This document shows positions 5,738-35,800 of a stretch of DNA of 64,000 nt, in pieces; the stretch's first letter is position 1, and each line of letters opens with the position of its first letter. A program made the translations under genes and the position numbers. The DNA comes from Octopus bimaculoides (taxonomy: Eukaryota). The notes under the pieces were generated by a model. It was not told the origin of the DNA. It did not search any database and saw only the letters and a list, made by a program, of their open reading frames with translations. The stretch is taken from assembly GCF_001194135.2 (NCBI RefSeq), contig NC_069008.1:17551128-17615127 (forward strand), given 5' to 3'.

Positions 5738-7346
5738 CTGAAAGAAAAAGATTAAATAAATGAATAAAATACAATTTTTTTTTTTATACTTGTTTCAGTC
5801 ATTTGACTGTGGCCATGCTGGAGCACCGCCTTTAGTCAATCAAATCAACCCCCGGGACTTATTCTTTGTAAGCCTAGTACTTATTTTATCGGTGTCTTTT
5901 GCCGAATTGCTAAGTTGTAAACACAGACACACAAACATATATATGGCTATAGTAGAAGACACTTGCCCAAGATGCCATGCAGTGGGACTGAACCCAGAAA
6001 CATGTGGTTGGAAAGCAAGCTACTTACCACACAGCCATTCCTATANNNNNNNNNNNNNNNNNNNNNNNNNNNNNNNNNNNNNNNNNNNNNNNNNNNNNNN
6101 NNNNNNNNNNNNNNNNNNNNNNNNNNNNNNNNNNNNNNNNNNNNNNNNNNNNNNNNNNNNNNNNNNNNNNNNNNNNNNNNNNNNNNNNNNNNNNNNNNNN
6201 NNNNNNNNNNNNNNNNNNNNNNNNNNNNNNNNNNNNNNNNNNNNNNNNNNNNNNNNNNNNNNNNNNNNNNNNNNNNNNNNNNNNNNNNNNNNNNNNNNNN
6301 NNNNNNNNNNNNNNNNNNNNNNNNNNNNNNNNNNNNNNNNNNNNNNNNNNNNNNNNNNNNNNNNNNNNNNNNNNNNNNNNNNNNNNNNNNNNNNNNNNNN
6401 NNNNNNNNNNNNNNNNNNNNNNNNNNNNNNNNNNNNNNNNNNNNNNNNNNNNNNNNNNNNNNNNNNNNNNNNNNNNNNNNNNNNNNNNNNNNNNNNNNNN
6501 NNNNNNNNNNNNNNNNNNNNNNNNNNNNNNNNNNNNNNNNNNNNNNNNNNNNNNNNNNNNNNNNNNNNNNNNNNNNNNNNNNNNNNNNNNNNNNNNNNNN
6601 NNNNNNNNNNNNNNNNNNTTACTCATTTTGCCCCGCTTCCCCATCACTCGTCCACTCACTCACTCATTCCCTCCCCTCACCCAGCCACACAGCTCATTCA
6701 TTCACCAAATGCCATAACCACCACCACCACCACCACAAACCCCCTCATCTCTTCCAACTCAACTCCCTTAAAAAAAAACATCACAAACACAGCCACAGTA
6801 AAACAAAAAAATAAAAAAATAACGAATAAAAATTAGTGGAAAGATTGTCCCACGAACCTGCAATCTTCGCATTGAGATTGAACCGGCATCAGCCTTCACT
6901 TTGCACGCCACCAAGAGGGCAGCGGTCGAACCAGCAACTTCCTTCGCTGATGCGATTAATTTTTCTTCACTTGCCTGACCCTGCACCATTGCATTAGCAG
7001 CCTCACACAGGCTTTGAGTTGCAGCTGCTACACGGCGAGCCTGCAAAAAAAGAGAAAGCAGAGAAACATCATCACCATTGTCATTTAATGCCCAGAATAA
7101 AATATATATATATACATATGTATGTATGCAGCAATTTACAGTTGATAACCAATGAATTTTTTACAATGTGTGTGTGTGTGTACTCTGTTCTCTTTATTCC
7201 TCTCTCTCTCTCCTCATCTGTCCTTTTTGTAGAAGAGCGAACGCTCAAAATGTTAAGAACTTCTTTGAATTTTCCTGATTATGAGCCTAATAAACCCTGT
7301 TTGTTCTTTTAACGTCATTCTCATGTTTTTTTTTTTTAACTTATAC

Positions 7347-10900: not shown

Positions 10901-13900
10901 ATCATGATAATTATATAGTCTTTCGCAGCTATTTGACGAATTTAAAAATAGATTTTAATAACAACATCAAAGAGAAGTGTAAAATAGTTTAGCATCAGTC
11001 ATGCAAAAAAAAAAAAAAAAGCAATACTAAAAAAGTGAAGAGTTTATTGTCATTAATTAGTAATTAGTTAAATATATTATTATTTTTATTATTATTGTAT
11101 TTCCCAGCATTGCAGACACTATACGATGTTTCCCCTAAAATGTCTTGAAAATTTAATTATGAGAATTATTATTACTTTTAAAAAATAATGCTTTGTTTTG
11201 CATTTATTTGAATGAATTTAGAAATAAAATAATTTGAAAATAAAACAAAATGGTTGAATATACTTAAATAAAGAGTTTATTATTCATTAACTATTATTAT
11301 TGTGGAGGGGCAATGGCCCAGTGGTTAGGACAGCGGACTTGGAATCATAAGATCGTGGTTTCAATTCCAAGACTGGGCGTCGTGAGTGTTTATTGAGCGA
11401 AAACACCAAAAGCTCCGGCAGGGGGTGGTGGCGAACCCTGCTGTACCAGCACAGACACGACTATCAACACACACTACACATACTCTCGACCTTCTATTGG
11501 TCTATTTATAATGGCTGGTTACTACCACATTTTACTGAGAGGAGTGTACAGTTTCACTATACAACAGTCACCAAGGGACATGCTCAACTGGTTACGGTCA
11601 AACGACTGACAAGTAAGTCTGTGGTATTGAGCAGAATATTTGCTGTAGTCCCATCTTTTTATACCAAGACAAAACAATGTACATAACACTTCCAATCAGT
11701 TCAGATCAGAAGCCATGAGAGCCACTGCCTGGTACTGCATCCGGGCATTAGCAAATCTGTGGTATTGAGCAGAATATTTGCTGTAGCCCATCTTTTATAC
11801 TAAGACAAAACAATGTACATGACAACACTTCCAATCAGTTAAGATAAGAAGCCATGAGAGCCACTGCCTGGTATTGCATCCGGGCATTTTATTTATTATT
11901 ATTATTATTACTACTGTATTCCTCAATGCTGAAGGCATGACGTTCACCTTCCAAACGTCTGAGCATAAGTCGAGGGTTTATTGTGTGTTCTAAAAGGACA
12001 AGGGTTACACTTTAAATTGAAGCGACCCTCATCCTTAGACCTCTCACTCATTCTCCCGTTTAACACCAGGCGATGGTCATCTTCACTAAACTTACCATGT
12101 CTCCCCACTGTACTGTAAAAGAAGAAAAACACAAATGCAGACTGTAAGTGAGTCACAGGACCTGTATTGCTAATCCCCTAATTTTACTGTGGATATTAAC
12201 AATTTAAACACAATCATAATAAATTCAGAGCAAATAGTTACATTTCTAGATAAAGAAAAAAAAAAGTTATTTCTAAAAGTCACAATTAATTGAAAAGATA
12301 CAAATTCAGATTAAATAAATTAAAATCCAGTGAGTCATTGTATTGACGGGATCAATGCTTCTTGATCCCCCTCCCCCCCTTTTTTTAAACCCTATGGACC
12401 CCTTTGATACCCGTTTCATTCTACTGGACCCTCGTACCCATTCAGGGTTTCAAAAAATCCTATTATATCCTTATAATCAAATTTTGTTAGGAATTCTATT
12501 AAGAAAAATTGTTAAAATATTTTGTGGATCTGTAGAAGTAGAGCCGATTAATTCTTTTATTTCTTTTACTTGTTTCAGTCATTTGACTTCGGGCCATGCT
12601 GGAGCATTGCCTCAAGTCGAATAAATCAACCCCAGGACTTATTCTATTCATCTCTTTTGTCAAATTGCTAAGTTATGGTGTTGTAAATACACCAACATCA
12701 GTTGTCAAGCAATGGCTGGGAGACAAACACAGACACACAAATACATATATATATATATATATGTATGTATATATATATATACGATGGGCTTCTTTCAGTT
12801 TCCATCTACCAAATCCACTCACAAGGCTTTGGTCAGCCCGAGATTATAGTAGAAGACACTTGCCCACGGTGCCACACAGTGGGACTGAACCCGGAACCAT
12901 GTGGTTGGTTTTTACCACATAGCCACTCCTGTGCCTTATTGCAGATAAATTTTAACAACAAAATCTAATATGGGTCCCTGAGGGCTGGATGGATCCTAGT
13001 TGAGAATCACTGGTCCAAACTATCAGATGTTAAACACCACTGGCCACAATGTGCTTCCAATTCTTAATTTATCTACCCCGAAAGGATGAAAGGCAAAAAT
13101 CGACCTTAGCGGAATTTGAACTCAGAACGTAAAGACAGACAAAATACTGCTAAGCATCTCGCCCGGCGTGCTAACGATTCTACCAGCTCGCTGGTCTTGA
13201 AGATTATTGCAAGAAGATTTATCTTATGGTCTTGAAGATTATTGCAAGTGAAATGGGTGGACGATGATCAATAGGACAGAAATGCTTTGTACATTAAAGG
13301 AAAAAAAGTATGTGAAGTTTAACAATGGAAAGAAACAAAAATTAAATTAAATGGAAGGAAATTCAATTATAAGTTTTAAAATGTAAAAAGAAACAATTGT
13401 TAAAGAATTATCTCTTGTACTTGGAAATACATGAAATATATGCAAATGTGAAATGTATACAAGAATCTAATCTACGTACAATCATCATAGAATATATGCA
13501 CAAACATGGAACACAGTAAGTTAACTGCAACAAATTAAATTTTAAAAAAAATTATGTCATATGCATTAATGTGTGTGTGTAATGTATTGGGGTCCACTGT
13601 GAAATTTATGCAGGAACATTACATATTTGTACAAGTGTAAAACTTATTATTAAGAAAGGTGCAACCTGTTAACATCCTGTGAAATTTAAGGACTAAACAT
13701 GCAAGAGGAGTGTAATTGAGTAACTGTGAAATGTATGCAGGAATATGTAAGTATAGTTAAATCAACGGGGGAATGTAATAAAGGAAACAAATATTCGTGT
13801 AATTTGCATAGAAAATGTAGAAAAAACATGGCTGCATCACAATGAAATGTGTGCAGAAATTTAATCACTATTTTAAAACAGACTTGCGCACGTGTTATGT

Positions 13901-16900
13901 TAATAGACGTAATAGAGGTGTTTGTACTCTTATGTGAAATGTATGCAGAAGCATGTAATGTGATGAAGGCTTGGTAAACTGCAAGCAGGATCTTGTAGGC
14001 AAGATATATGAAATGTACACAAACATATAATGAAGATTATGTGAAATTTAAGCAGGAGTATATAGGTGGGTAACTGAAATATAGGTAAACAGATGGATCA
14101 CACTGAAATATACAAAGATAAACATAGATATAAGGCTTTGTTGAATGAAATCCCATAAAATATATGCAGAAAAATATCACTGTAAAATGTGTAATCTACA
14201 GCCAATAACTGTGAAATATGGATGACAATACACCTTGTAATATGTACAAAGTTACTGTGGAAAGTATACTGATTGAAATCAACAGTGTTATATAAAATAT
14301 GCAGAAAAAGAATGTAATATACAGTAGGTCACTGTGAAATGTATGTAGAAACACTGTAGAACATTGTGAAATGTAGAAACTGAAGAATGATATACAGATG
14401 TGAAATTTATGCAGGCTCATGAAGTGCATTCATACAATGTATCACTGTAGGTTGAAACAAAACTTAGTACACATTGAGGTGCTGTGAAATGTATGCAGAG
14501 ATACAGTGACTATGAAATGTATGTTGAACTAAAGAATGTAATATATAGTGGCTGAGTGCTAAAAACTACACAGAACCATTAAAATATACAATGGATGATT
14601 GTGAAATGTATGCAAAGCCATGAAATATAATACACAACTTATGAATGTGAAATGTTTGCTGTAACATAATTCACTGAACTTTAAATGGGTGAATTATAAA
14701 CGAAAGCCTCCTTTAACAACCAAACTAGGACAGCCAGTGAGGTTGCCCCAATGCTAGAAATAACAGCCAAAATCACCCTCAAATCACACAGATTGTCTCA
14801 TAAAGGACAGACGATATTGCAATAGATCTCTACGAGCAAATAATGATGTCTATGTGGTTTCTAGATTTGCTAGAAGTAGCAGCTAGTTCTTCCTGAAATT
14901 AAAATCTACTGTCATAAAGAGGAAGAGGCCGCACTGGATAAATGTAGTCCAGAATAAAAGATGGGATGGTCAGGGGTGGAACATCTTTGATCATAGGTCT
15001 GCTGGATAAAAGCTGCTCTGGGGGCTAAATTACAACAATGACGAGGAGGAGGGACATACGAGATAATGTACTCCTAGATATGCTATGTCTGAATAATAAA
15101 TGAGACGGTTATGGCTGGAACCCCTTTGATCACAGGTTTGCTGGATCTGGACTGACCTGGGGCTAAGCAACAAGGACACATGAGAACGTACTCCTAGATA
15201 CACTTATGCCTGAGTTAATGACTGTCATTATTAAGCTGGTGTTTGGTGCATAAATTAACATATAATTATGATGGAAGGTTCTAATTTAGATCCCTTTAAA
15301 ATAAGAAGTCTTTATCAGAAAAATGGGTGAAATCTGGCGGATTGGGATCAAAAGGGGTCAACTCTAGGTTAATCTTGGTAAAAATGCTGTTTATTTCTTT
15401 TGTTACTCACTTTTACTCCTTTACTTGTTTCAGTCATTTGACTGTGGCCATGCTGGAGCACCGCCTTTAGTCGAGCAAATCGACCCCAGGACTTATTCTT
15501 TGTAAGCCTGGTACTTATTCTATCGGTCTCTTTTGCCGAACCGTTAAGTTACGGGGACCGAAACACACCAGCATCGGTTGTCAAGCGATGTTGGGGGACA
15601 AACACAGACACACAAACGTATATATATATATATATATATATATNNNNNNNNNNNNNNNNNNNNNNNNNNNNNNNNNNNNNNNNNNNNNNNNNNNNNNNNN
15701 NNNNNNNNNNNNNNNNNNNNNNNNNNNNNNNNNNNNNNNNNNNNNNNNNNNNNNNNNNNNNNNNNNNNNNNNNNNNNNNNNNNNNNNNNNNNNNNNNNNN
15801 NNNNNNNNNNNNNNNNNNNNNNNNNNNNNNNNNNNNNNNNNNNNNNNNNNNNNNNNNNNNNNNNNNNNNNNNNNNNNNNNNNNNNNNNNNNNNNNNNNNN
15901 NNNNNNNNNNNNNNNNNNNNNNNNNNNNNNNNNNNNNNNNNNNNNNNNNNNNNNNNNNNNNNNNNNNNNNNNNNNNNNNNNNNNNNNNNNNNNNNNNNNN
16001 NNNNNNNNNNNNNNNNNNNNNNNNNNNNNNNNNNNNNNNNNNNNNNNNNNNNNNNNNNNNNNNNNNNNNNNNNNNNNNNNNNNNNNNNNNNNNNNNNNNN
16101 NNNNNNNNNNNNNNNNNNNNNNNNNNNNNNNNNNNNNNNNNNNNNNNNNNNNNNNNNNNNNNNNNNNNNNNNNNNNNNNNNNNNNNNNNNNNNNNNNNNN
16201 NNNNNNNNNNNNNNNNNNNNNNNNNNNNNNNNNNNNNNNNNNNNNNNNNNNNNNNNNNNNNNNNNNNNNNNNNNNNNNNNNNNATAACTCTCCAGAATTT
16301 TTTCTTCAGACGTAGAATATCTAAAATAACATTATGCAGGGTGCAGCAAAATAAGGAACCTCAGATTCACCATTCTTGATAAATGTTTCAACAGCAAACG
16401 CATAGCATGTGTCAGTCCGAACTACAATGGTAACTGAAAAACAAAATGGTAAAATATTAGCGACAGGAAGACACCATTTCCACCTGTCTAAGTTAATTAG
16501 TGCCACAAGAATGGCTGTGTAAAAGGTGGGAGGATTTTCTGCCACATCCGATAAATTGTGCTAATCTTTTTTAAGAGGGAAAGTGTGTGATCTGAGAGAG
16601 ATTTGGTAGATACTTCTAGCAGTTTGTAGAATGTTCTAAGGAAAAATATCTGCAGTGAGTATTGCAGAAATGCTAAGGAATGCTTACAGAAATGATGAGG
16701 AATGTGACTGAAGCATTGAAGATTGCCACAAGAATTCCAAGTATTGTAACGAGTGCTGCAAAGAAGGTCACAAGAATGCTACACGAATTGCAAAACATGC
16801 AACAGACACAAGAAAAACGGTAAAGAATGGCAACAGAATTGTAATAAACATCAAAATAATAATAGTAACGCCACAGGAAGGCTAAATGAATGTCAAAAGA

Positions 16901-17686
16901 ATTTTAAGGAATGCTAGATGAGTGCAACGGTGACGGCTATAACAACAATAATGGTGAGAAACAATGACGAGGAGGAGGGAATACGACATTCAATTGTAAT
17001 GAAGGCTAAAAGAAGGCTAAGGAACACAAGAACAGTTCTAGGATTCACAAGACTGCTTAAAGATATCACAATGGTTGCAGGAATAGTCACAGCTATATTA
17101 CAATTGTGACGACTGCTACACAGATAAGGAATGCCACAAAAGAAAAACAAAAATGGTACAAGAATGCTAAGAAATATCACAGAAAACACTTATGAGTGTC
17201 ACAAGAATGCTAAAGGAATGCCACAAGAACAAAAACAGAAAAGAATGGTAAAAAGAAAGTCGTAAGGATGTCAGTTTTGTACTTCACCTTACTACCTACT
17301 TCCACCACCCCTGCCACTCCCTGATTGTGGTTTAAAAAAAAGACCCCCCCCCCCCAGTGGTCCTCAACAGGGGTTCACATGACCCTTAGAGGACCACATA
17401 AGATCTGGTTGTTAAAATTTAGGTCCAATACACAAAATATTTTTTCACAATTTTTAATTAACACAATTCCTCATAATTCCTAATTATAAAGATATAAAGG
17501 GATTAAAAAAAAAAAATTAGGGTCCAATAGAGTAAAATAAGAATCAAAGGGGCCCATAGGTAAAAAGGGGTTGAGACCCTCTGGTATAGACCCCGAAAAG
17601 ATGAATAAAATTTTGACCATGGTGAGGTTTGAACTCAGGACACAAGGGCCTACAACTGAAGTGTTTTAAGTTAGCTTGTCCATCAT

Positions 17687-17718
<32 letters not shown>

Positions 17719-18154
17719 CCTTTCTACTAAAGGCACAAGGCCTGAAATTTGTGGGGAGGGAACTAGTCGATTACATGGACCCCAGTGCTTCACTGGTACT
17801 CAATTTATCGACCCCGTAAAGATGAAGTCGACCTTGGCGGAATTTGAACTCAGAATGTAAAGATGGACAAAATACTGCCAAACATTCTATGCAAACAATT
17901 CTGCCAGCTCACCACCTTAACAATAATCATAATAATAATAGTAATCCTTTCTACTATAGGCACAAGGCCTGACATTTTGGTGGAGGGGACCAGTTGATTA
18001 CATCAACCCCAGTGCATAACTGGTACTTAATTTATCGACCCTGAAAGGAGAAAAGGCAAAGTTGACCCCGACAGAATTTGAACTCAGAATGTAAAGGCCG
18101 GAGAAATGCCACTAAGCGTTTTACCCGGCATGCTAACGATTCTGCCAGCTCACC

Positions 18155-18187
<33 letters not shown>

Positions 18188-19322
18188 CTACAACAAGAAC
18201 AACATGGTAACAACAGCAAATACGAAAACAACAACAGTAATAATAATAACAATAATAATAATAACAACGATAATAATAACGATAATGACGACAACGATGA
18301 TTAAAACAAAAAAGGGTTTTGTTGTTAGAAATATGAAAGGTGACGAACCTAATTTACCATCTGGTGACGGTAATGCACTAGTATCTGTTTTATATTTTTC
18401 TGCAGAAAAGAACACATTGGACATGAGGCGGAGGAATACAAGAGGAAGAGAAAAAATAGTTCTTTGGGAAATCGGGCCAGGATATTAATAATGATGATAA
18501 TAATAATAATAATAATAATAATGATGAAAAGGATGATGATAATAATTATGACAAAGATAATGCTTCTTTCTACGATAGGCAGAAGACCTGATATTTTGGT
18601 GGAGGGACTAGTTGAGTGCAATAACCTCTCGTGCTCAACTAGTACGTATTTCATTGACCCATTGCCAAGAGGGTGAAGGGCAAAGTTGACCTGGGTGGAA
18701 TTTGAACTGAGGACGTAAAGACAGACGAAATGCTGCTAAGCATTTCGTCCAATGTGTTAACGATTCTACCAGTTTGCTGCCAAAATAAGTGGCAGCTACG
18801 AGAGTCAAACATAAAAGGTTATCCCTATTGTCATCAGAGCATTGGGGGTCAACACCACCCAATCTGAAAAAACATCTGTAAACCTTAGAAAAAAAACCTA
18901 CAATCTAGATGTATTGCAAAAGTCGGCATTACTTGGAATTGCACGCATATTGCGTAAAGTACTGTCTGTCTGAGGTCCTTGTTGTGACTTGACAAACAGT
19001 AAAAACCCCTGGTAGACACAATATCTTTAATCAATAACCTCACGGTATTGCATACTGTGCGACATCTATGATAACAACAACAACAATAATAATGGTTTCA
19101 AATTTTGACACAAGGCCAGTAAGTTTAGAGGAAGGGGTTAGTCAATTATATTGCCCCCCCCCCTTCTATGCTCAGCTGGTACTTATTTCATTGAACCCCC
19201 CCCAAAAAAGATGAAAGGCAAAGTCGACCTCAGTGGAATTTGAACTCAGAACGTAAGGATGGACGAAATGCCGCTAAGCAGTTTGCCCAACATGCTAACG
19301 ATTCTGCCGGCTTGCCGCTTTC

Positions 19323-19375
<53 letters not shown>

Positions 19376-21747
19376 GTAACAATAATCACGAGTGACTGAT
19401 GAGATTTTACTGGTGGAAGTTAGAGGGGGGGGGGAGAAAGGCATGAAAAATTGTAGCAAAACAGAAAGGACAATAAAGTGTTCTGTTAGCGCATGTCTAA
19501 ACACAAAGGGTCAATGAAAAAACCCCACAAATTCCAGATCATCAATTCTATCAAAGGCAAGTGTCTCCCCCTAGCCTTGTTCTCTGGTTTCCAGGTCCAT
19601 GTTGAGATTAAGGGCCCATTCAGCCACACCGAAATTTGTCACTCTCATCCATCATTAAGCAAATTTTTAGAATTTGTTGAGGGCACCATCTCCCTCTTCA
19701 AGGGACCAAAGTCCAAGGCCATAAATCTAACAAGAAGGGATCACAGCTGATCATATTTAGAAGGCATGTGGCTTACTGATTTGGGTGTTGCACTCATGAT
19801 TGTAAGATCATGGGTTCAATTTAAGGACTAGGCGGCACATTGTGTTCTTGAGCAAAACACTTCATTTCACGTTGCTCCAGTCGATTCTGCGACAGACTGG
19901 TATCCTGTTCAGAAGTAAGGGCAACAACTATGGCACAGGTCAAGCTCCCTGTGACTGGTGGAGGTTATCCTTAGACTGTAAACCTGGCCTAAAGGCTTGT
20001 AACAGACTAGAGTCTGCTAAATGCAACCCAGGAATATTAACCCTTTTGTCACCCTATTTCTGTTGAGATGCTCTGTGTTTCTTTCAAATAATTTTGAAAA
20101 TAACAAAGAATTTAGTAAAATAACTTTGTTATCATTAAGCTAGTGTTAGGAACATAAATTGTGACTAAGGTTTTGGTGGAAGATTTTAATTCAAAACTTA
20201 TGAAAACAAGACATTTGTACTACAAAGCCAGAAATGGTTTCAGCCAGTTTGGTATGGAAAGGGTTAAACACACTTCTACATTTGGGCAGATGCACATTAG
20301 AAGCAGTTGGAAGGGTGTGGATTGAAGGAAATTTAGGCTATTATTTCTAGCTTATAGAGCGGCCACATTGAGGTCTCCTTCTCTCATGTCTTCTGCTGAT
20401 TATTTTTCTTCTTAAAGGAGACAAGAAATTAAACTTAAATCCTAAGAACAGAAATGCTGGTCCTCATCTAGTTTCTGCCGACCAAAACTTCCTTTAAATT
20501 TTCAGTTGATCTGAAGCTAGAGAAGACACTTGCCTAAGGTGCTGCGCAGTGGGCTTGAACCCGAAACCTCATAGTTATAAAGCAGAGCGAACTTCTTAAC
20601 CACACAGCCATGCCTGCATAATACACTAAACTGAAATCAAAGCATTTGTTNNNNNNNNNNNNNNNNNNNNNNNNNNNNNNNNNNNNNNNNNNNNNNNNNN
20701 NNNNNNNNNNNNNNNNNNNNNNNNNNNNNNNNNNNNNNNNNNNNNNNNNNNNNNNNNNNNNNNNNNNNNNNNNNNNNNNNNNNNNNNNNNNNNNNNNNNN
20801 NNNNNNNNNNNNNNNNNNNNNNNNNNNNTATAAACATAAACCCCAACAACTTTATGTTTAGAAATAATATCATGAAATAAGAAACCAAATCAATTAGTTG
20901 ATAATTTCTAATTTCGGGACAAGGGCCAGCATTTTTGAGGGAAAGGTTTAGCTGAAACCACTGACCCTATTTCTTGACTGGTATCCTGATAGGATTTGAA
21001 CTCAAAACATAAAATGTCAGACACATGTCACAAGGCATTTTCCCAATGCTTTCATATTCTGCCAAACCACTAACTTCAATAATAATAATAATAATAATAA
21101 TGGTTTCATGTTTTGGCACAAGATGAGCAATTTCGGGGAATGAGGTCAGTCAAGTCAATTACATTGACCCCCAAGTATCCAACTGCTACTTATTTTACTG
21201 GACGAAAAAGGGTGAAAGGCAAAGTTGAACTCGGTGGAATTTGAACTAGGAATGGAAAGATGGATGAATTGCCGTTGAGCACTTCATCCAGCGCAGCAAC
21301 AATTCTACCAGCTTGCCAACTTAGTGACGATGACAACAACATCACGGTTTCAAATTTAGTTGGTACTTATTTAACAATCCTGCAGGAATCAAAGGTAAAT
21401 TCGACCATGGCAGAAATATATATATATATCAAAATATATTATGCAAAGTGTTCAGTTATTATATATCCATTACAACCGATCTTACCAATCGGTTTCGCAC
21501 AGGGGCTTCAAAGGGAGTGTTGGGTAACAATCCGATAATGTAACCCTGCACTCATCAGAGGTATCTGATCTGGAATGAAATATGGCGACTACCCTCTCAA
21601 TAGTATTTAAATACTACTGTATTTAAATATACAATATATGAATATAATAAAATACAATTATATGACAATATGTATATAAAATACTACATACATATACATA
21701 TGTATGTATAATACAATTATATATATAAATATACAATACATAAAATG

Positions 21748-21790
<43 letters not shown>

Positions 21791-22170
21791 GGAAAATGAA
21801 AAATAATAATAAGGCAGAATGCTAAACTGGAAGCATATTTTAATAGAGATTTCTCTAACCGGCTTTCATTGTGAAGCAAATTTTCAAGAAGAGGGAGAAT
21901 GAAAATGTTTTTTACAAAGAAGTACAAAATAAAGAAAATAATATATAAAAAAATAAATATACCAATACCTTATATTGTCTTTGAACTTCAAAAGCTCAAA
22001 GACAATATAAGGTATTGGTATATTTATTTTTTTATATATTATTTTCTTTATTTTGTACTTCTTTGTAAAAAACATTTTCATTCTCCNNNNNNNNNNNNNN
22101 NNNNNNNNNNNNNNNNNNNNNNNNNNNNNNNNNNNNNNNNNNNNNNNNNNNNNNNNNNNNNNNNNNNNNN

Positions 22171-22229
<59 letters not shown>

Positions 22230-23798
22230 CATATATACACATGTGTGTGTATATATGTATATATCTATACGTAAATGCATGCAAAAAATATATAACACTG
22301 ACTACGACTGTGCTGCGCTCTACTGGGTAAGGCAGGTGAGTGATAGGTAAGTAGTGGACAGGTGTTCACACATGGTTAGACAAGTAGGTCGATAGGTAGG
22401 CAGGTAAAGAAAAAAAATGTTCACACACTGTTAGCAAAACTCACAGTAACACAGACACACACACATTGGTCAGTGAGGGAACAGGTCAATCGAATCAGTG
22501 GTCCTCAACCAGTTTTTGCATTTGAAACCCTTTATTCAGATGGGTCCTCTTAGCCATTTGATATTTAAAAAAATCCTATTCACCATCATGATCATTTAAC
22601 GTCTGTTTTCCATGCTGGCATGGGTTGGATGGTTTCACTGAAAACTGGTAAGCTGCACCAGGTTCCAATCTGATTATATTTTCATAATTAATTTTTGTAA
22701 TTATATCATATAATTAAATATTATCAGGAATTTCATTAAAGAAATTAAACATATTTTGTGTATTCTAGAAAATACAACCAAATTTTATCAGATTTAAATT
22801 TTAGCAACAAAATTTTATACGGACCCACAATGGTCACATGGGCCCTGGTTGAGAACCACTNNNNNNNNNNNNNNNNNNNNNNNNNNNNNNNNNNNNNNNN
22901 NNNNNNNNNNNNNNNNNNNNNNNNNNNNNNNNNNNNNNNNNNNNNNNNNNNNNNNNNNNNNNNNNNNNNNNNNNNNNNNNNNNNNNNNNNNNNNNNNNNN
23001 NNNNNNNNNNNNNNNNNNNNNNNNNNNNNNNNNNNNNNNNNNNNNNNNNNNNNNNNNNNNNNNNNNNNNNNNNNNNNNNNNNNNNNNNNNNNNNNNNNNN
23101 NNNNNNNNNNNNNNNNNNNNNNNNNNNNNNNNNNNNNNNNNNNNNNNNNNNNNNNNNNNNNNNNNNNNNNNNNNNNNNNNNNNNNNNNNNNNNNNNNNNN
23201 NNNNNNNNNNNNNNNNNNNNNNNNNNNNNNNNNNNNNNNNNNNNNNNNNNNNNNNNNNNNNNNNNNNNNNNNNNNNNNNNNNNNNNNNNNNNNNNNNNNN
23301 NNNNNNNNNNNNNNNNNNNNNNNNNNNNNNNNNNNNNNNNNNNNNNNNNNNNNNNNNNNNNNNNNNNNNNNNNNNNNNNNNNNNNNNNNNNNNNNNNNNN
23401 NNNNNNNNNNNNNNNNNNNNNNNNNNNNNNNNNNNNNNNNNNNNNNNNNNNNNNNNNNNNNNNNNNNNNNNNNNNNNNNNNNNNNNNNNNNNNNNNNNNN
23501 NNNNNNNNNNNNNNNNNNNNNNNNNNNNNCAGCACTATTTTTCAAAAATTTCAATCATTTGATCTTATCAGAGTTGTCTCCATTTCTTCTTTATTTTGTT
23601 TAACCTTTCAGCATTTAAACCGGCCAATATATTCTACTCGTTTTATGTTCAAAACTGGCCAGATCAGGTATCTCATACCTACTCTGCAAGGTCAGCCTAA
23701 AAATAAGCTATCATATCATGAAAATTTCCAGGGGGGGTTACAGACAATGAACAATCACAGTGAATTGAAGATTTGTCTCCTCATTTCATTTGCCAAAA

Positions 23799-23839
<41 letters not shown>

Positions 23840-25253
23840 ATTTGTGGAGGCACATGATTTAGTGGTTAAAGTGTTGCCCTCCTGATCTGAGGTTGTGGTT
23901 TCAATCCCTGGCTCAAGCAATATGTTGAGTTCTTAAATGAAAGATTTCATTTCATGCTGCGCGTGTCCACTTGGCTGAGTAACCAATGGAGCGCCAGTTA
24001 TATATAAGGTGCATGGCTTAGTGGTTAGGGCATTTGGCTCAAGACCATAAGGTGAAGAGTTCAATTTCCCAGTAACATGCTGTGTCCTTGAGCAAGACAC
24101 TTGATTGCATGTTGCTCCTCCTGTCCACTCACCTAAAGGCCAGCCTTTTCACATCGTGTGTCACACAGAATCCCCCTGAGAACTACGTTAAGGGTACAAG
24201 TGTCTGTGGAGTACTCAGCCACTTTCACAAGCAGGCTGTTTCATTGATCAGATCAAGCAAAACACACATCGTTGTAGCTGACAGAGTGTGTGTGTGTGTG
24301 TGTATTTGAAAGTGTATGTGTGTGTGTATTTGGGAACAGAAGAGAAGACATTAGGGAAGGAGTGGGGGAGGGGGTGTTGCTAAAAAAAAGAAAAGAAAAA
24401 AAGAGAACCCTGCTCAGCAGCTCAATTAGTAAAAACAGCCATTAAAAATATATCCAACTAATTAACATTACAATTAGTAATAGTTTTTTTAATCATATTT
24501 TAATCAGTAGTAATTAAGGACAACAACACTTGGCTCAGGTGTTGTTGTATCGGAGTGCAGCGGAGAATGCAATGCAGTCTTATAGCAACAAGGCGGGGAG
24601 GAAAGAGAGTGTTGGGGGGGGGATGGAGGCACAAAAACTAAACAATGCAATTATAGTTGTGTGGTGGTAGCGGTGGTGATGAGGGAAATGATGATGATGA
24701 TGATGATGATGACAGTGGTGATGGTGGTGGTGATGACAGTGACGGCACCGCCACCGCTGGTGACAGTGGCAAAGATGGCAGCGGTTTTGAAGAATACTTA
24801 TGTCTGGCACAAGTCCAGCAATGTGCAGGGGCTGGGATGGGGTGGGGGTTGGGGTGGTTTCCGGGTGACGATAAAAGTGAACCCAGTATTATAACTGGGA
24901 CCTTACGGCGAGTGCATATCTCCGCTGGGACGGGCACTGGGGTGTGTAAACTCAACAGGAATAACTGTTGTATACAAACCTATATATAAAGCAAACCAGT
25001 TTTATTTTATACACTCATGATTGTTTATACATACAATTATGACTGTATACATACATTAGCATACATGGACAGATATTCACACACACACACACACACATAT
25101 ATATATACATACATATCACTGTATATTCATACATATATGATCCACTGTGAACAAACACACACACATACATACATACAATTATAACCAACACATACACATG
25201 TATGCACATATTGTATAAACACAACCTGTGCTGTATTATATATACATGTATGA

Positions 25254-25299
<46 letters not shown>

Positions 25300-25904
25300 N
25301 NNNNNNNNNNNNNNNNNNNNNNNNNNNNNNNNNNNNNNNNNNNNNNNNNNNNNNNNNNNNNNNNNNNNNNNNNNNNNNNNNNNNNNNNNNNNNNNNNNNN
25401 NNNNNNNNNNNNNNNNNNNNNNNNNNNNNNNNNNNCATCTATATTCTAGATAAAATATTTAAATTACAGATATATATATATATATATATGTTAATGTGTA
25501 AATAAAACATTGGACCTTCCTGGGGAATTTCCGATACAAAATAATATTAAAAAAAAAACAAAAATTTTTAAAAAAGATAAAAATTGGGTGCAATTTCTCT
25601 TTACGCCACAAAAGTAAACAAGGTAAAAATAAAAAAATAGACAAAAAAAAACAAAAGAATAATTATGAAGGAACACAGTATGACAAAGTGATAGGATTTG
25701 GTAAACAACAATGGCAAGAATTCCATGATTCTAATACTGGCACAAGGCCACCAGTTTTGAGGGGAGGGGGTTAGTTTATCACACTGAATCCAATGTGTGG
25801 CTGGTGCTATGTTTTATCAACTTTGGCGGGGAGGAACAGTAATGCCAACCTCAATAAATAACGATGTAATATTAACATAAGATATACATACATATATATA
25901 TACA

Positions 25905-25970
<66 letters not shown>

Positions 25971-26992
25971 TATATATATATATATATAAATGGAATGGTG
26001 GTAGCTGTAATATTTATCTCAAAGACCCTTCTCTTAAGACATTTTCTGTGTAAAGCGCGCGCACATACAAATGCTTTGTACTTCAATTTGTCACGTTTTA
26101 ACGAATATGAAGTAAGTTTAGATTATAATCACAAGCATGGTCATGTGGTTAAGAAGTTTAGTTCGCAGCTGTGTGGTTCTGGGTTCATTCCGACTGCATG
26201 GCATATTGCGCATAAAGGTGTTTTAATGCAAAGCGCCCAAATGGTTAAAGGAATTTCATACTGCTACCAAGGACTAAAGTTTAAGGTTTAGGCATCTCTT
26301 CGGTTATAGCTTCAGCTTCACCAATGCTTAATGAGAGGAATTTGGTTGACCGAAATGGTGCAGGTGTCCATCATATCCCATACACACACCGAGCAAAATC
26401 ATAGTTGTGGCAGATACCAGTGTCACACAAATGGCATCTGTGCCGGTGGCACATAAAAAGCAGTCGCTACACTCTCAGAGTGGTTGGCATTAGGAAGGGC
26501 ATCCAGCCGTAGGCTACCATGCCAAATCAGACTAGAGTCTGGCACAGCCTTCCAGCTTGCCAACCCAGTCAAACCATCCAACCCATGCCAGCATCGACAA
26601 TGGACGTTAAATGATGATGATGATGATGATGATGATGGTGGTTATTAATATGATGCTAATGCGTTGTATTAGAATGTTGTCTTGAAGTCTGATGACAAGT
26701 CTCTTCAAATCTCAAGATCCTTGTTTTGGATTCTTACAGAATATAGGATGGGACTTTTCTACCAGTTGACAACATGAGTCTCAACTTCAATGCTACCTTA
26801 AAGGGGTCACCCCTTTAAGGTAGCATTTTGGATGTTGTGTCAAGTGTACCTATTACTACAGACATTGTTCGCCGTCCTCTTATGTTCTCTGGCCGGATCC
26901 TCCTATTTCTCAGTTACTTTGGTATCCACTTATTACGTGTCAGATTGTAAAGTCTATGACTGTATAATTTGCTTCCATCCTTTACAATACCA

Positions 26993-27024
<32 letters not shown>

Positions 27025-27739
27025 ATGTTTTGGGTTAGATATAGCATCCTTGATGTTGATTNNNNNNNNNNNNNNNNNNNNNNNNNNNNNNNNNNNNNNN
27101 NNNNNNNNNNNNNNNNNNNNNNNNNNNNNNNNNNNNNNNNNNNNNNNNNNNNNNNNNNNNNNNNNNNNNNNNNNNNNNNNNNNNNNNNNNNNNNNNNNNN
27201 NNNNNNNNNNNNNNNNNNNNNNNNNNNNNNNNNNNNNNNNNNNNNNNNNNNNNNNNNNNNNNNNNNNNNNNNNNNNNNNNNNNNNNNNNNNNNNNNNNNN
27301 NNNNNNNNNNNNNNNNNNNNNNNNNNNNNNNNNNNNNNNNNNNNNNNNNNNNNNNNNNNNNNNNNNNNNNNNNNNNNNNNNNNNNNNNNNNNNNNNNNNN
27401 NNNNNNNNNNNNNNNNNNNNNNNNNNNNNNNNNNNNNNNNNNNNNNNNNNNNNNNNNNNNNNNNNNNNNNNNNNNNNNNNNNNNNNNNNNNNNNNNNNNN
27501 NNNNNNNNNNNNNNNNNNNNNNNNNNNCAAAAGATTAATTAATTGTAATATTATTATTATTATTATTATTAAGAAATACATCAGATTAAAAAAGAAAATA
27601 AAAATTATAAAACTTCATCATCATCATCATCATATTCATCATCCAAGCTGTGATGCTATTAATAGAATTGTCATCCTTTCAAAGCAGCCAATCAGAGGGG
27701 AGGACATACAGACAGACAAAACAAACAGATGAAAGGAAA

Positions 27740-27792
<53 letters not shown>

Positions 27793-29002
27793 AGCAGGTG
27801 GGTAGATGGAATACAGAGGGGGGAAGGAGACAGACAGACAGACAGACAAAGAGGAGGAGAAAGAGACAGGGAAAAGGGTGGAGGAGTGGGTGGAAGTGTG
27901 GATGGGTGGTTGGACAAATGGGTGGATGGAGGGATAGATAGATAGAAAAGCAGATGGGCAGGTACCTGGACAGACAGGCAAGTACCTGGACAGACGGGCA
28001 GGTACCAAGATAGTTGAGCAGGTATACAATTAAATACATACCTGGGTAGTTTGGTAGGTAGAGGGAAAGGGAAACAGACGAATAGAAAAGTAGTTGGATA
28101 TGTAGGCAGACAGGTGAGCAAACTGATAAATGGGTGGATAGAGAGATCTACCTGGACAGGTAGAGAAAGAGGCAGAAGAGCAAAGGGAAAAATAAGTAGA
28201 GTGGTTGTTAGTTAGATAGCTGAATAGGCAGGTGGATGATTAATCAGAGAGATGTAGAGGGAGATAGCTTGGCAGGTAGTTAATTAAGAGTTGAGAGGTG
28301 GGTAAGTACAAACAGATTGGTAGAATGTGAAATGAGAAAACGCAACACACAAAGAAGACAAACAAGAAAATTTTTTAAAATATAAAAGGAAGCAATGTAT
28401 GTATAAAAGTATGTGTATGTGTGTGTATATATATGTAAAAGTATAGGAATGAGACAATTGGGCACTGCTGTTTGGCTGCTGGTGATTTGGCATGGCTGAC
28501 TGGAGATTGAACTATTTTGATGCCAGTACTTTTTGGCACTGGAGGCAAATACACTCACACACACGCAGATAGAAAGATTGCAATTTATGAACTGAACATG
28601 ATTGACTAACACTTCCCCACTCTTCATACGCATACACATATAAACAGAGAGAAAGAGAGAGAGAGGAAGGGAGAGAGAGAGGAAGGGAGAGAGAGAGGAA
28701 GGGAGAGAGAGAGAGATATTATACATACAAAGATAAGCTCACACTCATAAACAGAGGGAAAGAGAGAGATTAGTATTGAATACAATTGACAGACACTTTT
28801 CCTCTCTTCAGACACATAAATCAAAATATAATTACACACATAAACAGAGGCATAAGGGGGAGGAGAAGATGAAAGAAGAATTCAAACATCTGATGTCAGT
28901 ATTGAATCAGCAACACCAAAGAGGCAGCGCCAAAACAGCAATGTCAAAATGTTCCACACCCTATATATACACACACACACACACAAAGACACAAATAAAT
29001 AC

Positions 29003-29038
<36 letters not shown>

Positions 29039-29839
29039 CTTTCTCATCTCCAACAACTTGGTCTGTACATCCACTTCAAATCTTACAATACTTTCACAAA
29101 AAATAGTCTTTCAGTCATTTTTCTTTTTTTTTTTTTGGCAAGTGGGGGTAAATATATCTTAGACTGTCTCTCTTACCTTTTAGCAACTATCGTTATGAAA
29201 ACATCAACACAATCACACAAACTGCTAGAAATAGCCAAATACCCGCTGAATCACATTGGTTAGTATCTTAACACATGTACCCCGACTGATTCATCGCAAA
29301 CTTCACACAAATGCACCACCAGTGGTACATTTTCATAATTTAAGAAAATATTTCATTCTGCATCTGTGACATAGTTTTGAGGACATTTAAATAACACGAA
29401 TGCTAAATATTAAGGTTTATCCTCATAATCAACATCCATTGTCCATGCTGGCATGGGTTGGACAGTTTGACCAGGGCTGGTAAGCTGAGGGGCTGCACCA
29501 GACTCCAGTCCAGTTTGGCATAGTTTCTATGGCTGGATGCCCTTCTAATGTCAACCACTCGGAGAGTAATGGGTGATTTCACGTGCGACCAACACGTTTG
29601 TCAGTTCAATTCTCTGATCAAGTAGCACATTTGTATCCTTGGGCAAGAAACTACTTCACATTGTCCTCCTTCAGTCATCTGAAAATGAATCACACTTAGG
29701 TGTTAAGCAGAGGCTATTGGCCCCCTAATCTTAAAAATGAGACAGGGACAACCCTTAGTAACTAAGACACATGAGACAACAAGGGCACAACAAGGTCCCT
29801 TTATGACATGTACAGATGTCTGGTCCTTTAGTTTGTCTC

Positions 29840-29880
<41 letters not shown>

Positions 29881-32615
29881 GTGATTGAGATGTCCTCCTC
29901 TAGAGCAATAACTTTCACCTTGGACATAAGTTTTGGTAAAATCTTCTCCCAACCAAACCAAAGAGCTGACCCAAGACATATTCACCACAGAAAAAAAAAT
30001 GACCGATTTAAAAAGAAATGAATAAAGTATTGAAAGAACTGAAAAGAAATTGAATCCATGAATTAATTAATTATAATTATTTTAACGACACACAACAAAC
30101 AAATTCATTATGTCAGTAGAAAAAAATAACTAAAAAAAAAAACCCTCTTAAGGCGTTGTTATGGTATTTTGTGCATTGATTGTTGCTAACAAACCAGTAA
30201 TTAATGTGGTTAATGAAGAAATATAACAAACACTCACTGGCTCGTTAGTTGACAATCATTGCTGTTTGTAGTGGTGGTCACCATAAGGTTTGGAGAGATG
30301 GACATCCAAAATATAACATTCACACAGGTGTACATATCTATATGTATGTATGTATATATAATACACACATATAGGAAGAATGAGCACTAGGTGGATTCCT
30401 CATATGCTAAAGGTAGACCCCATATGGTCTGACCATTAAGAAAAATTAGACGTCTTCTCTCGGGAGGTGAGGAATATCAATAAACAGTGAAGTTTGCTGT
30501 TGTTTGTTGTCAATAAATTTCACTGTATGTAGTTCAGGGCTTTTTCATGTGAAGTACAGAATGCAAACTTTTACATACAAAACAGGCCTTGTACATCATC
30601 ATCATCATCATCATCATCATTATCATGTACAAGTATGAAATATACCCACAAGGCATTGGCTGACCAGCGGCAACAACAGAAGGCACTTGCCAAATGTGCC
30701 ATGCAGTAGGGCCGATCCCAAAACCACACGGTCGACAAATGAAATTCTTAACCATGTAGCCATGTTTACACTTGTAATAAATATAATTTATGTGCTTTCA
30801 TGTAGGACGTGTTCCTAGAGCAACATTCGGGCTTGGTTATCAGACAGATCTGGCCCCTTACACCTATCCTACAATGTCATTGTAAAAAAAAAATAAACAA
30901 TCAAATCATTGGAATCTCAAAGCTATGAGATAATCCAGGATTAATTCAAAACAATCTGGATAAATAAGGATTATATTTAACAGATTAATCAGATTGCTAA
31001 AAGTAATTTGGTAAATGCATTTAATTACATTGGAGACACTAATTATTATTCGTTGTATATGAATTGGCATTTCCACTGAAGACTTTTATAGAGTGACCAC
31101 CACTTTGACCAAACTCTTCGCTGTCCATTTAAAAAACCATAACACAACGACAAAAAAAAAAAAAAAAAAAAAAAGAACAAAAAGAAGAGGGTTTTCTTTT
31201 TTTTTTTTTAACAAAATTTTTGACTGAATGTTGGAGAAGTTAAAAAACAGAAACAGGGGGGCGTGGGGCAGTGTTTCGGGGCCGACACACAACACATTGC
31301 TTTTGGAGAGCAAACCACAAACCTTCGTTATCTTGGATATAGTAAGCTGTAAAAACGAAAAACTCTTAAAGCTGAAGACAACAGAAATTTCAGATGAGTT
31401 CTGCAAAGAGGTGTCGGTAACAACAATAACAAAGCAACAATTGGTGCCACATGGTGAGTGTATATACACATATATACACGTGTGTGTATGTATGTATATA
31501 TATATATATTATGTTAGCATTTGATCCCATAGTGTGGTAAATAAAAGAAACATAAAAACATATAATATATACATATATATATATATATATAAAAATATTA
31601 ACTTTGCTACAATCTGTGTGTATTTATAATATATATATGTGTGTATATGTGGGGATAATTTCAACTAAATTTTTTTATAAGGAAGTGGAGGCTTTCAGTC
31701 ATTTGTAAGTTATCTCACTTCAAGTTTAACTTTGAAATGCAAAAAATGGGTCCAGGGAGGCGGGACTAAGCCACTTTGGTGTTTCTGCCCAAAGCAGAAA
31801 TTTTTTTCTCTATGGTAAACCGGAGTGAAAAAAGGGTCTTTTTTTTACAGGTTCAATATGTCCCCCAAATGTATTTGAACTGATTGGCAAGTTTGTTTAG
31901 TCCTCATCACTGCTTTGAATTCCAACCATGTGTATCTACTTATGTATACACACATATATTATCGTTATTACTTCAGCTTTAGCAAAAGTGAAAGTATTGT
32001 TTTTAGTTGTATTTGTTTGTTTGTCTGTGGACAAAATATCTCAAGATATCTCTTATACAACCTTTTTTCCAAATTTAAGCCCCCAAAATTAGAGGGTTTA
32101 TACACATTAAAATACAGTATATATATATATATTAATAGAGAGAGGATCATTAAGGGCCACCAGAAGGATATTTGAGGGTTGCACACAATCCTGGGAGCTG
32201 CAGGTAAGAATTGCTGGTCAAACCCTGTTTACCATACACACATATATATATTTGTGTACAAACAGTTATTGCTTATATTATATATATATACATTATTTCA
32301 TATATATACATATATATATATTGATATATAGACAGATGGATTACAAGTTGCTAGTGTTATCACAAACACAAAACATTTAACACAGTAAGATATTTACAGT
32401 TTTATTTCACTAATTAGTGGTAATTACTGATCAATATCATTAAGACTCATGTTCACAGCAATCATCAGATGTACATGGAAACAAATAGCCCTTGTAGAAG
32501 ACAGAAGACACAACACCAAACTCAGTTCTTTGAGAAGGTTCTTTGTTCCTAGGTCTGTCTGGTGATTACCATATCCATGACCCTTGGTACAGATGCAAAA
32601 CCAGTAGTTATCACC

Positions 32616-32647
<32 letters not shown>

Positions 32648-32866
32648 TTGTATTTGATGGCATAAAATAGATGCTTGGCCTTATTAGATGCAAAGAATCA
32701 GCAGCGCATTCTCAAGAAAAAAAAAAACGGTTTTCTTTTGAGTATTAAATCTTACGGGAGGCCCAACCATGCATATAGGACGTAGGGTGACTTTTTGGAG
32801 ATATTTTTTGGCTAAAAACAGGGCATCTTATATACCATGAAATACAGAATGTGCACGCATATATAA

Positions 32867-32898
<32 letters not shown>

Positions 32899-35800
32899 TT
32901 CAGAAAATCATTTAAACAGAAAATGTCAAAATTTTACAAATTCTAATTACAACATTGAATATTTGTTTTGAAACTAAACAGTAAAATATGTTAATTTTTT
33001 TTTTCTGTATGTTTTGGTTTTGTTGGGGAGAAAATATAAAAACAGGACTAGATAAACAAATAGACCCAAGCATACCACTGGTACATAGTTTACCCTTCGT
33101 TACCTCCCAACCAATAAGAATGCAGTAAAGCCTTATGCTGAGTGTAGTAGCATACGGGGATGGGGTGGAATGCGGGTGCATGTGTTGGGCCATTGTGTGT
33201 GCATGTGCACTTAGGTGTGTGTGGATGTGTGTTGTATTTGCACGCATATGCATCTCAATGCATGTGAGCCTGTGCATGTGTGTGCATGCATTAGTGTGTG
33301 TACATGATAGTGGGTTGTATGTGTACACTATTGCGTATGCATGTATATATGAGTATGTGTTTGTTTTCCACCAATGCTTGATGATGGTGTTGGTTTGATT
33401 ACTTCCCCCTACAACTTAATTGTTCGGCAAAAAAGACCGACAGAATAAGTACTAGGGTTTAAAAAATGTCCTGGGGTTGAGTTGGCTGGCATGAATTAAG
33501 ATAAATGATTTTGGTTTGTATTTGTGAGAGAACAAGCATAAAATTTGTATGGTTTGCTGTGTGTATAACCATGTATGTTTATATGTGTGTGTATATGAAT
33601 GTAACAAAACTAACAATAATTTAATATTATTATTATTAATAAAATAATTCTAAAATTTAAAAAATAAAATTTCCAAACAACAAAAAGAAAAAAAAACACA
33701 GGAAAATTCTTTGTTTTTTTTTAGTTTTACCTGAACACAGACCAAAAAAAGAAAACCAACCCAAAACATGCCCACCACCTCTGAAAACTGTGGGTAGGTG
33801 AGGGCGATGTAAGGCACAAGTGAAAGGAAATGGTTGTGCAGAAAAGCAAGGGTTCCAAACGCTACAATTATTTGCCAAAAGGTTAAAAGTAAGGGTCATG
33901 GCGGCAGGGGTCACACACATGCCAAAACCATTTTGGAATTCTGTGATTCTAGAGAACCTGACATTATACCCCGACAGAGTGATTCTCCTGACGCAAGTTT
34001 GATGCGAACATTGTGAAGTGTATACCTTGCTGATGAAGTGTAATAACATTTAAGCATGTTTGGAGTTGTCTTTCCTGATATGATGTTAGTTTTGAGTGAA
34101 TACGCAGAGCCTAGTGGTTAGGCAGTTCTACACATGGTCATAAGATTGGAGCGAGTGAGGTGTTATGTTCTTGGGCAAAACACTTCATTTCACTTTGCTC
34201 TGGTGCTGTGTTGGGGACTGGCACATCAAAGAATAGACCCAACGCTTCCTCTGCATGTCGTAAACGGCAATGAGAGGAGGGTCCAGTTAGGATTTGCACT
34301 CTGACCTTTTAAAAAAACCCTTACCAGTGATGACTACCCCGAACTGATCCATGGGCTGGAGGGCTGTCGCTTGAATGGCGCAAAGGGGTCACCAACAAGT
34401 GGTTGATGCTGTTACAGTGCATGTCCCCAGACATGAGCTAATCCTCAGCTAATCCTAAATCCTGACCATTCTTCTTAGACAGTTCAAATGAAGATTATTA
34501 TGAGAAATATCCTAAGTCTAATGTATATACATGTGTGAATGTGTGCGCATATGTATGTATATATATATGAGTGTATACATGTGTGTGCGTGTGTGTGTAT
34601 GCATGTATGTATATATGTGAGTGTATACATGTGTGTGTGTATGTATGTATATGTGTGTATGCATACATTGTGTGTGTGTGTATGTATATATACATGTGAG
34701 TATGTATGTATGTATGTATGCATATGTGTGTATGTATACATATATATGTGTATGTATGTATATATATGTGTATGTATACATATATGTGTATGTATGTATA
34801 CATGTGTGTCTATATATATATATATATATAAATATAAAGGCAAGTATGTATGTGTGTGTGTGTGTATGCATGTATGCTTGAGTAAAAGCTATGCAGTCTG
34901 TATGCACATATGCTGTGTAGATACACCAACTACATAACAATCCCTCCACCCTGGCCCACCCCATATACCGGGAACACACGGAAAAAGAATGTGAAGTGTT
35001 GTATCACCTTTGATGGCTTCCGCACACTGCACAATTTCTGCGACGGACGTGGCCACATTTCTTGACACGCTCACCATGTTCTGTTTTGATTCAGCTGAGG
35101 GCTTCTGCAGAGCCTGTAATGAAGCGGGGCAAAAAGAAACAGAAAAAAAAAAGGCTAAGTAAAATATAATCAAAGAAAAAAAAACTAATGTGTATTTATG
35201 TATCTGGGTGTCTGTCCCACCCTGCTGGGTGGTTGGAGCTAAGAAGGGCATCCGGCTGTAAAAAGCATGCCAAAACAGACACAGAAGTCTGGTGTAGGCT
35301 CCTGCCAGACCAGCCCCTATCAAACTATCCAACCCTTGCCAACATGGAAGGAAGAGGGCATTTAAATGATAATGTCTGTCGTAAGAGCTCACAAATGCTG
35401 AAGTCACAATGTGTACTGGCGCCATGTAAAAAGCACTGGTGATGGTGGCCAAGTAAAAAGCACCCATTGCACTCTGTAAAGTGGCTGGCATTAGGAAAGA
35501 CATCCAGCTGTAGAAACCATACCAAAACAGAGAGCAGAGTTTGGCGCAGTCTTCTGGCCTTGCCATCTCTGGTCAAATTGTCCAACCCATGCCAGGAAAC
35601 ATTTGGTATAGATTTGGTTTGGAAGCAAACCTTTTAACTGCACAGTCATGTCAGCACCTAACTTCTGGCTATCATCATCATCATCATTGTTTTAACATCC
35701 ATTTCTCCGTGGTTTTAGGGGGTCGGATATTTAATAAAAAGGGGTCAAAGGTTTGATGAAATACTTACGTAGCTAACATGCTCAAGGACTTCTTTGTATG

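Follow-up and report, generated by a model that had tools for sequence, protein, structure and literature searches.

A talin gene with a long intron at the R12-R13 linker

The window analysed here is a stretch of 64,000 nucleotides from Octopus bimaculoides (contig NC_069008.1 of assembly GCF_001194135.2, positions 17,551,128 to 17,615,127), the minus strand of which is occupied by a talin gene from approximately rod bundle R11 to near the C-terminus, as located by tblastn searches with a talin C-terminus and splice-aware refinement of the exon borders. The window-encoded protein matches full-length talin-1 (PDB 6r9t) at E = 9e-120 and its homologues bear the Pfam domains Talin_IBS2B and I_LWEQ; by these matches the host gene is talin and the encoded part belongs to rod bundles R11-R13/I_LWEQ. 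A first-pass annotation of the window proposed that one intron of this gene contains three small cassette exons (hereafter C1, C2 and C3). Taken together, these segments are most likely chance AG...GT open stretches in an ordinary, long and repeat-rich intron that is spliced directly.

The exon for the final R12 helix (35008-35113, minus strand, as are all octopus talin features below unless indicated) ends in phase 1 with GCC ATC AAA G and the donor AAG/gtgata (slashes mark exon borders), whereas the exon at the start of R13/THATCH (10654-10778) begins acag/GG CCT AAT TGG (aaacag/GGCCTAAT). Between them lies a phase-1 intron (10779-35007) of 24,229 nt, a length which is an estimate, owing to assembly gaps. 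The borders at 35008 and 10778 are thus as first annotated, with a 24.2-kb phase-1 intron following AEAIK-G. The alignment to the R11-R12 structure (PDB 3dyj) runs up to the G of AEAIKG and that to R13 (PDB 2jsw) begins six residues later. Because the former ends and the latter starts around the junction, the intron is confirmed, at the level of these alignments, to interrupt the predicted R12-R13 linker, in agreement with the original placement of the site. When 35008 is joined directly to 10778, the distance from K to DPT in the resulting talin equals that in approximately 85 other talins from many phyla.

The intron had also been described as exceptional in length. Its size holds, but it is not alone in this respect, since a second talin intron of 20,072 nt is present at 57520-37449, between the exons ending with KDSAK and starting with TMVTNV. 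The counterpart of that intron is also large in Elysia (∼7 kb), and the annotation of Bulinus splits the talin gene there.

The acceptor of the exon at 10778 is weak, with a pyrimidine fraction of 0.5. Upstream of it, a 67-nt zone free of AG dinucleotides (10779-10846) extends back to a strong pyrimidine tract and an AG at 10846, which suggests a distant branch point. AG-free zones upstream of acceptors often go with regulated splicing. A similar acceptor layout is found before the first R13 exon of Bulinus.

The intron directly after the first R13 exon contains a stable mir-190 hairpin in the sense orientation (10302-10382), which reaches 49.2 bits with Rfam family RF00672, above the gathering score of 48, and has a folding energy of -35.2 kcal/mol (z = -4.5). 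The hairpin is equivalently placed in Bulinus truncatus (contig L003, 12858-12934) and Elysia chlorotica (contig L002, 30313-30388). Mouse Tln2 hosts mir-190 in intron 51 (PMC2702505), and the octopus position corresponds; the presence of mir-190 in a talin intron is an already known, deeply conserved host-gene synteny. Since mir-190 sits in the next intron, the 24-kb octopus intron would by inference be orthologous to mouse Tln2 intron 50.

Candidate segments and the chance level of in-frame chains

All three segments have an AG acceptor and a GT donor at their borders. C1 (31323-31346; 24 nt; acag/CTTACTATATCCAAGATAACGAAG/gtttgt) has a moderate acceptor and a weak GTTTGT donor, and on its own would insert AYYIQDNE in frame. 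C2 (acag/TTATTC...CTCGCC/gtaagg) is 58 nt long (24964-24907), or 73 nt if the acceptor at 24979 is used (24907-24979), and its acceptor is purine-rich. C3 (12096-12112; 17 nt; ttttacag/TACAGTGGGGAGACATG/gtaagt) combines a CAG acceptor with a consensus ATG/gtaagt donor. When C1, C2 and C3 are joined, their phases chain 1>1>2>1 and the resulting frame is free of stops. The minus-strand reading agrees with the first-pass annotation at every coordinate, and its borders, phases, stop-free join and translation were all reproduced. What the annotation did not include is a second AG five nucleotides downstream of the first (...acagtacag/), use of which would shorten C3 to an in-frame 12-nt version (12107-12096) inserting VGRH.

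Only C1 preserves the reading frame alone. C2, in either length, and C3 at 17 nt do not: inclusion of C2 by itself leads to a stop after 21 codons, and that of C3 by itself to a frameshift and a stop in the next exon. As each of the two breaks the frame, the three-exon model requires their obligate co-inclusion across 12.8 kb.

In order to find out how often such chains arise, AG..GT segments of 3-120 nt were counted, single cassettes being those that are in frame, stop-free and go from phase 1 to phase 1. The sense strand of the 24-kb intron contains 6,829 segments (8,883 antisense), of which 1,145 (1,330 antisense) qualify as single cassettes; in-frame chains of two exons number 1.62 million (2.20 million antisense) and those of three exons 1.54 billion (2.45 billion antisense). 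In the other long intron, single cassettes amount to 870 on the sense and 1,137 on the antisense strand, and first-order Markov resamples of the 24-kb intron yield 900 ± 42 of them, versus the 1,145 observed. Open in-frame chains are thus not in excess over chance, triple chains being commoner in antisense than in sense. With so many chance chains, stop-free and phase-compatible chaining carries no information. This bears directly on the model originally put forward, that is, a set of co-regulated cassettes C1+C2+C3 producing a talin isoform with a Tyr/Ser/Pro-rich linker longer by 33-38 amino acids (aa): the AG/GT borders and the in-frame chain speak for it, but about 1.5 billion such chains are available by chance, and two of the exons would have to be co-included over the distance given above.

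Splice-site quality and coding potential

Splice sites were evaluated by a generic position-weight score, the pyrimidine fraction at positions -22 to -3 and the number of matches to MAG/GTRAGT, with the antisense strand and the second long intron (20 kb) among the controls. Ten acceptors were scored; the pyrimidine fraction is 0.8-0.9 in all of them except that of the exon at 10778, and the real donors of the gene are mostly GTAAGT-like. C2, by comparison, has an acceptor with a pyrimidine fraction of 0.5, and the GTTTGT donor of C1 has T at both +3 and +4. Segments as good as or better than C1 occur 32 times in the intron and 14, 32 and 14 times in three control sequences; for C2 the corresponding numbers are 160 in the intron and 174, 174 and 142 in the controls. 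The sites of C1 and C2 are therefore not better than intronic decoys, and both segments are most likely due to chance.

Of the three candidates, C3 alone is distinguished from the decoys. Its acceptor has a pyrimidine fraction of 0.85, among the top 9 of the 971 intronic AGs, its donor agrees with the consensus at eight of nine positions, which places it in the top 6 of 1,331 GTs, and a branch-point-like CTTAC motif lies ∼30 nt upstream. As a pair, the two sites rank second of 6,802 (two equal-or-better segments in the intron), and each of the three controls contains zero equally good pairs. It is thus conceivable, if very unlikely, that C3 alone is a real alternative microexon, either in its frame-shifting 17-nt form or in the 12-nt form, which is in frame and stop-free. 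The 17-nt form would truncate the protein before R13 and the dimerisation helix, and could act as a poison exon subject to nonsense-mediated decay or give rise to a short protein without actin-binding site 3. The linker exons of gastropods described below display the same strong-site architecture, but C3 has no similarity to them; moreover, the better of its two AGs is the first, the one that yields the frame-shifting form. The post-hoc expectation of a C3-like pair (sites within 30-120 nt of each other, in 22 kb) is approximately 0.07-0.3, and at looser thresholds the 24-kb intron contains 20 'strong' pairs versus 17 in the other long intron. The site quality of C3 is accordingly notable but not compelling.

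The codon usage of the three-segment insert looks like that of an intron. Its log-odds value is -0.24 per codon, versus +0.44 to +0.95 for the real exons, although the measure is crude and trained on the window's own exons, so that the real exons are self-scored and their values optimistic. Open intronic decoy windows have a value of -0.64 ± 0.43 per codon, 17% of them equalling or exceeding the insert. Together with the weak C1 donor and C2 acceptor, this intron-like codon usage argues further against the three-exon model.

Assembly gaps and repeats

Six runs of N, totalling 2,173 of the 24,229 nt, interrupt the 24-kb intron, which is also rich in microsatellites and SINE-like repeats. Neither C1-C3 nor their splice sites touch any of the gaps; since the frame passes via splice junctions rather than through contiguous sequence, uncertain gap lengths are irrelevant to it. 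Unbroken sequence links C1 to the upstream exons and C3 to the downstream exon. C2 is located on a 1,770-nt island (23530-25299) with a gap at each side; because gaps bound this island, the order and orientation of C2 depend solely on scaffolding, a further point against a model that needs all three segments.

The intron contains 50 rows of tandem repeats. TA/AT microsatellites, which are the usual cause of assembly breaks, adjoin three of the gaps. None of C1, C2 and C3 falls within a repeat internal to the window, and only a microsatellite is found near C2. Just downstream of C3, at 11618-11888, a 139-nt unit resembling a dispersed SINE-like element is tandemly duplicated (2.0 copies, 93% match), and a further SINE-like piece is present at ∼17964-18040. 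A CT-rich low-complexity block (27640-28150) has long open frames rich in Ser, Leu and Pro, as well as the top-scoring but spurious splice-site pair (28151-28042). A tRNA scan found none. Recursive splice sites (a pyrimidine tract followed by AG/GTRAGT, sense strand) have three matches in the window versus 3.3 expected, one of them in the intron (24127-24140). Elsewhere in the gene, the exon for AAGNAVKK...NKRMVGG is absent from the assembled window sequence and is probably inside the gap at 6046-6618, and the last talin coding exon is interrupted by the gap at 5252-5689.

Linker exons in gastropod talin genes

Gastropod talin gene models carry insertions of 2-34 aa exactly at AEAIK/G. Among the Biomphalaria glabrata isoforms (UniProt A0A2C9KA95, KAF0, KA87 and KA86), one reads directly from K to G (P0169), and the others read K-VS-G (P0171), K-DALQVRWSHWVA-G (P0172) and K-AQIDVCSFYDRKAAS-R (P0173). 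The Elysia chlorotica model reads K-DQINACLFFVKKAA-R (P0185), and the Littorina saxatilis model has a 34-aa insert, the tail of which, DSHSFRWSGYNP, resembles the P0172 insert (P0174). At the genomic level, two exons can be recognized. Exon a is 45 nt long in Bulinus truncatus (L003, 6388-6432; ttttcag/.../gtaagt) and 42 nt in Elysia chlorotica (L002, 16220-16261; gtttcag/.../gtaagt), whereas exon b of B. truncatus is 36 nt long (L003, 9620-9655; ctctcag/.../gtaatg). Each of them is frame-preserving, and the altered residues at their flanks are as expected for a phase-1 intron. Between Bulinus and Elysia, two distant heterobranchs, exon a forms an island of nucleotide identity in an otherwise unalignable intron, and the cassettes correspond to the four annotated Biomphalaria isoforms and to the Elysia model. 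Judging from this conservation and from the gene models, gastropods do have real cassette exons in the R12-R13 linker intron. No paper describing them was found in the literature searched.

Smaller insertions are found at the same junction in other animals. Two additional residues are present in a Biomphalaria isoform (K-VS-G), as they are in three talin-2-like entries from fish (K-DG-G), and a model of the nematode Parelaphostrongylus tenuis has eight (ASLNDLEE); the snail, fish and nematode entries are P0171, P0179, P0205, P0210 and P0217. All linker insertions in the gene models of other animals comprise whole numbers of codons. The +2 aa forms would fit the use of an alternative acceptor 6 nt upstream, whereas the octopus acceptor at 10778 has no AG at that distance. 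Small insertions thus seem, in these gene models, to recur at the R12-R13 linker junction. In this respect the idea behind the original proposal, that an insertion into the linker is plausible, is borne out, as the gastropod insertions occur at exactly AEAIK/G.

The gastropod exons also raise the possibility that the octopus intron hides real linker cassettes other than C1-C3, either elsewhere in the assembled sequence or in the ∼2.2 kb that is unassembled. The gastropod precedent, namely the conserved 36- and 42-45-nt cassettes in the orthologous Bulinus intron, the latter also in Elysia, raises the probability of such exons. Consistent with it, the linker intron is the largest within the fetched part of the gene in both Elysia (16.7 kb) and Bulinus (6.8 kb), and the weak acceptor at 10778 is preceded by an AG-free zone, as in Bulinus. 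Other in-frame candidates with strong sites do exist in the octopus intron, at 18399-18358 (42 nt), 33787-33731 (57 nt) and 16433-16371 (63 nt), but their number is at the control level.

What lowers the probability is that no homologue was found. Neither tblastn nor Smith-Waterman comparisons over 1,171 in-frame cassettes revealed an exon a or b homologue in the octopus intron above the antisense and other-intron controls, the best Smith-Waterman score being 33, in low-complexity DNA, versus 32 in the antisense control. The motifs QI[DN]xCxF[FY]xxKAA and DxxxxRWSx[WY] are not matched anywhere in the assembled 22 kb when all sense frames are read, and a search of the intron with the nematode 8-aa insert returned nothing above controls. 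In addition, a bivalve talin model and the cephalopod-like transcript described below show the direct junction. Considering both sides, we regard hidden exons of this kind as unlikely in the octopus. Either cephalopods are without the gastropod exons, or the exons have diverged past recognition, or they lie within the gaps.

C1-C3 score only 7-11 in Smith-Waterman comparisons with the gastropod and nematode inserts. The resemblance of C1 (AYYIQDNE) to the nematode insert, both being eight residues long with A first and E last, was rejected, its score of 11 not being significant. For the three-exon model, an insertion of up to 34 aa at the exact junction in the Littorina gene model is a point in favour, but the octopus insert shows no likeness to the insert of Littorina or of any other gastropod examined. 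Taken with the chain counts, the splice sites and the codon usage, this makes the co-regulated C1+C2+C3 isoform extremely improbable.

Transcript and database comparisons

The closest available sequence to the octopus gene is a Logan RNA contig (L001, run SRR9970006), with 78% nucleotide and ∼87% amino acid identity. It shares with the octopus gene an otherwise unseen WVDY motif and is cephalopod-like. This single transcript reads AEAIK/GRDWVDYDDP, i.e. it displays the direct junction before GRDWVDYDDPTV, with no insert. At positions ∼1125-1140 of the contig, a frameshift at a run of A residues (cgccaaaaaaaacact) breaks the open frame, so that two genes are called; an error of sequencing or assembly is the probable cause of the frameshift.

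Further searches gave little in addition. With the hypothetical insert isoform as query, and among proteins of ∼0.6-1.75 times the query length, only exon-sized talin fragments of other animals were retrieved, none of which matched the insert. A 339-aa spliced query and a full-library HMMER search returned the gastropod isoforms and the one cephalopod-like transcript, and no octopus talin. Two metagenome scans, one with a degenerate talin peptide pattern and the other with the octopus mir-190 arm, gave no cephalopod match.

Interpretation

The three segments are present in the sequence, and their properties do not rise above chance. In the reading that we favour, the intron would be removed in one piece, with 35008 spliced straight to 10778 and the canonical R12-linker-R13 arrangement as the product; its size would derive from microsatellites, SINE-like repeats and low-complexity DNA, and the three 'exons' would be chance stretches picked from thousands, corresponding to no real isoform as a set. 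We infer that C1-C3 are not spliced into mRNA. Against the proposal that they form a talin isoform stand the abundance of chance chains, the poor sites of C1 and C2, the intron-like codons and the direct junction in the cephalopod-like transcript. The tissue specificity and phospho-regulation suggested along with it are purely speculative. Since the octopus exons are no better than chance, there is no ground for treating the three-exon set as a discovery.

Several points weigh against direct splicing as the whole account. The transcript with the direct junction is a single one and displays only the major isoform. The architecture of C3 is unusually good and microexon-like, and its pair of sites has the high rank given above. 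Approximately 9% of the intron is unassembled and could conceal exons. Finally, the real cassettes in the orthologous gastropod intron raise the prior for hidden octopus exons. By analogy with gastropods, octopus talin might use one or more small regulated linker exons, the best candidate being C3 (12 or 17 nt), possibly with C1; on balance we consider this unlikely.

Were such exons to be used, a change in linker length before R13 would be a recurrent, perhaps ancestral, molluscan means of tuning talin, and the +8 aa nematode and +2 aa fish talin-2 models hint that the same site is used elsewhere. The three-exon set, if true, would add a class of talin isoforms at a mechanically critical place, where the rod is tethered to the C-terminal module for actin binding and dimerisation.

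Comparison with known talin variants and microexons

Neural microexons are 3-27 nt long and depend on SRRM3/4. This size range includes C1 (24 nt) and C3 (12 or 17 nt), and the strong sites flanking C3 are typical of microexons. At 17 nt, however, C3 shifts the frame.

In the literature searched, no talin microexon or linker variant was found at the R12-R13 linker site; the variants that are known lie elsewhere. Exon 17b of TLN1 (Gallego-Paez et al. 2023, PMC9997659) is a formerly unannotated 51-nt in-frame cassette that lay hidden within a talin intron and for which an effect on mechanics has been proposed. It differs from the octopus candidates in being located between exons 17 and 18, not in the R12-R13 linker, and in being backed by RNA-seq and experiments. 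Exon 54b of mouse and human Tln2 (Debrand et al. 2009, PMC2702505) is responsible for a tissue-specific, in-frame insertion of 15 aa into the C-terminal actin-binding region; unlike the octopus site, it is an EST-supported extension of exon 54, between residues 2458 and 2459 inside R13. Skipping of Tln2 exon 43 (PMC2702505) is another known variant away from the linker. In Ciona intestinalis, alternative splicing of a single talin gene produces Talin-a and Talin-b and alters C-terminal actin binding (Singiser and McCann 2006, PMC1702346), but this is achieved by alternative last exons which replace the C-terminal 78 aa, without a linker cassette.

The closest counterparts are the gastropod cassettes, which lengthen the linker by 12-15 aa (by 34 aa in Littorina). 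Their strong pyrimidine tracts, GTAAGT/GTAATG donors, individual preservation of the frame and, for exon a, conservation set them apart from the octopus candidates, which share none of this support except for the splice sites of C3 and have no sequence similarity to the gastropod exons. What the two have in common is the setting: the gastropod cassettes are likewise small and lie in the same phase-1 intron, there between AEAIK and G(S/T)DWVDP, with mir-190 in the next intron. In that setting, the gastropod cassettes make linker-length tuning of actin engagement testable in molluscs.

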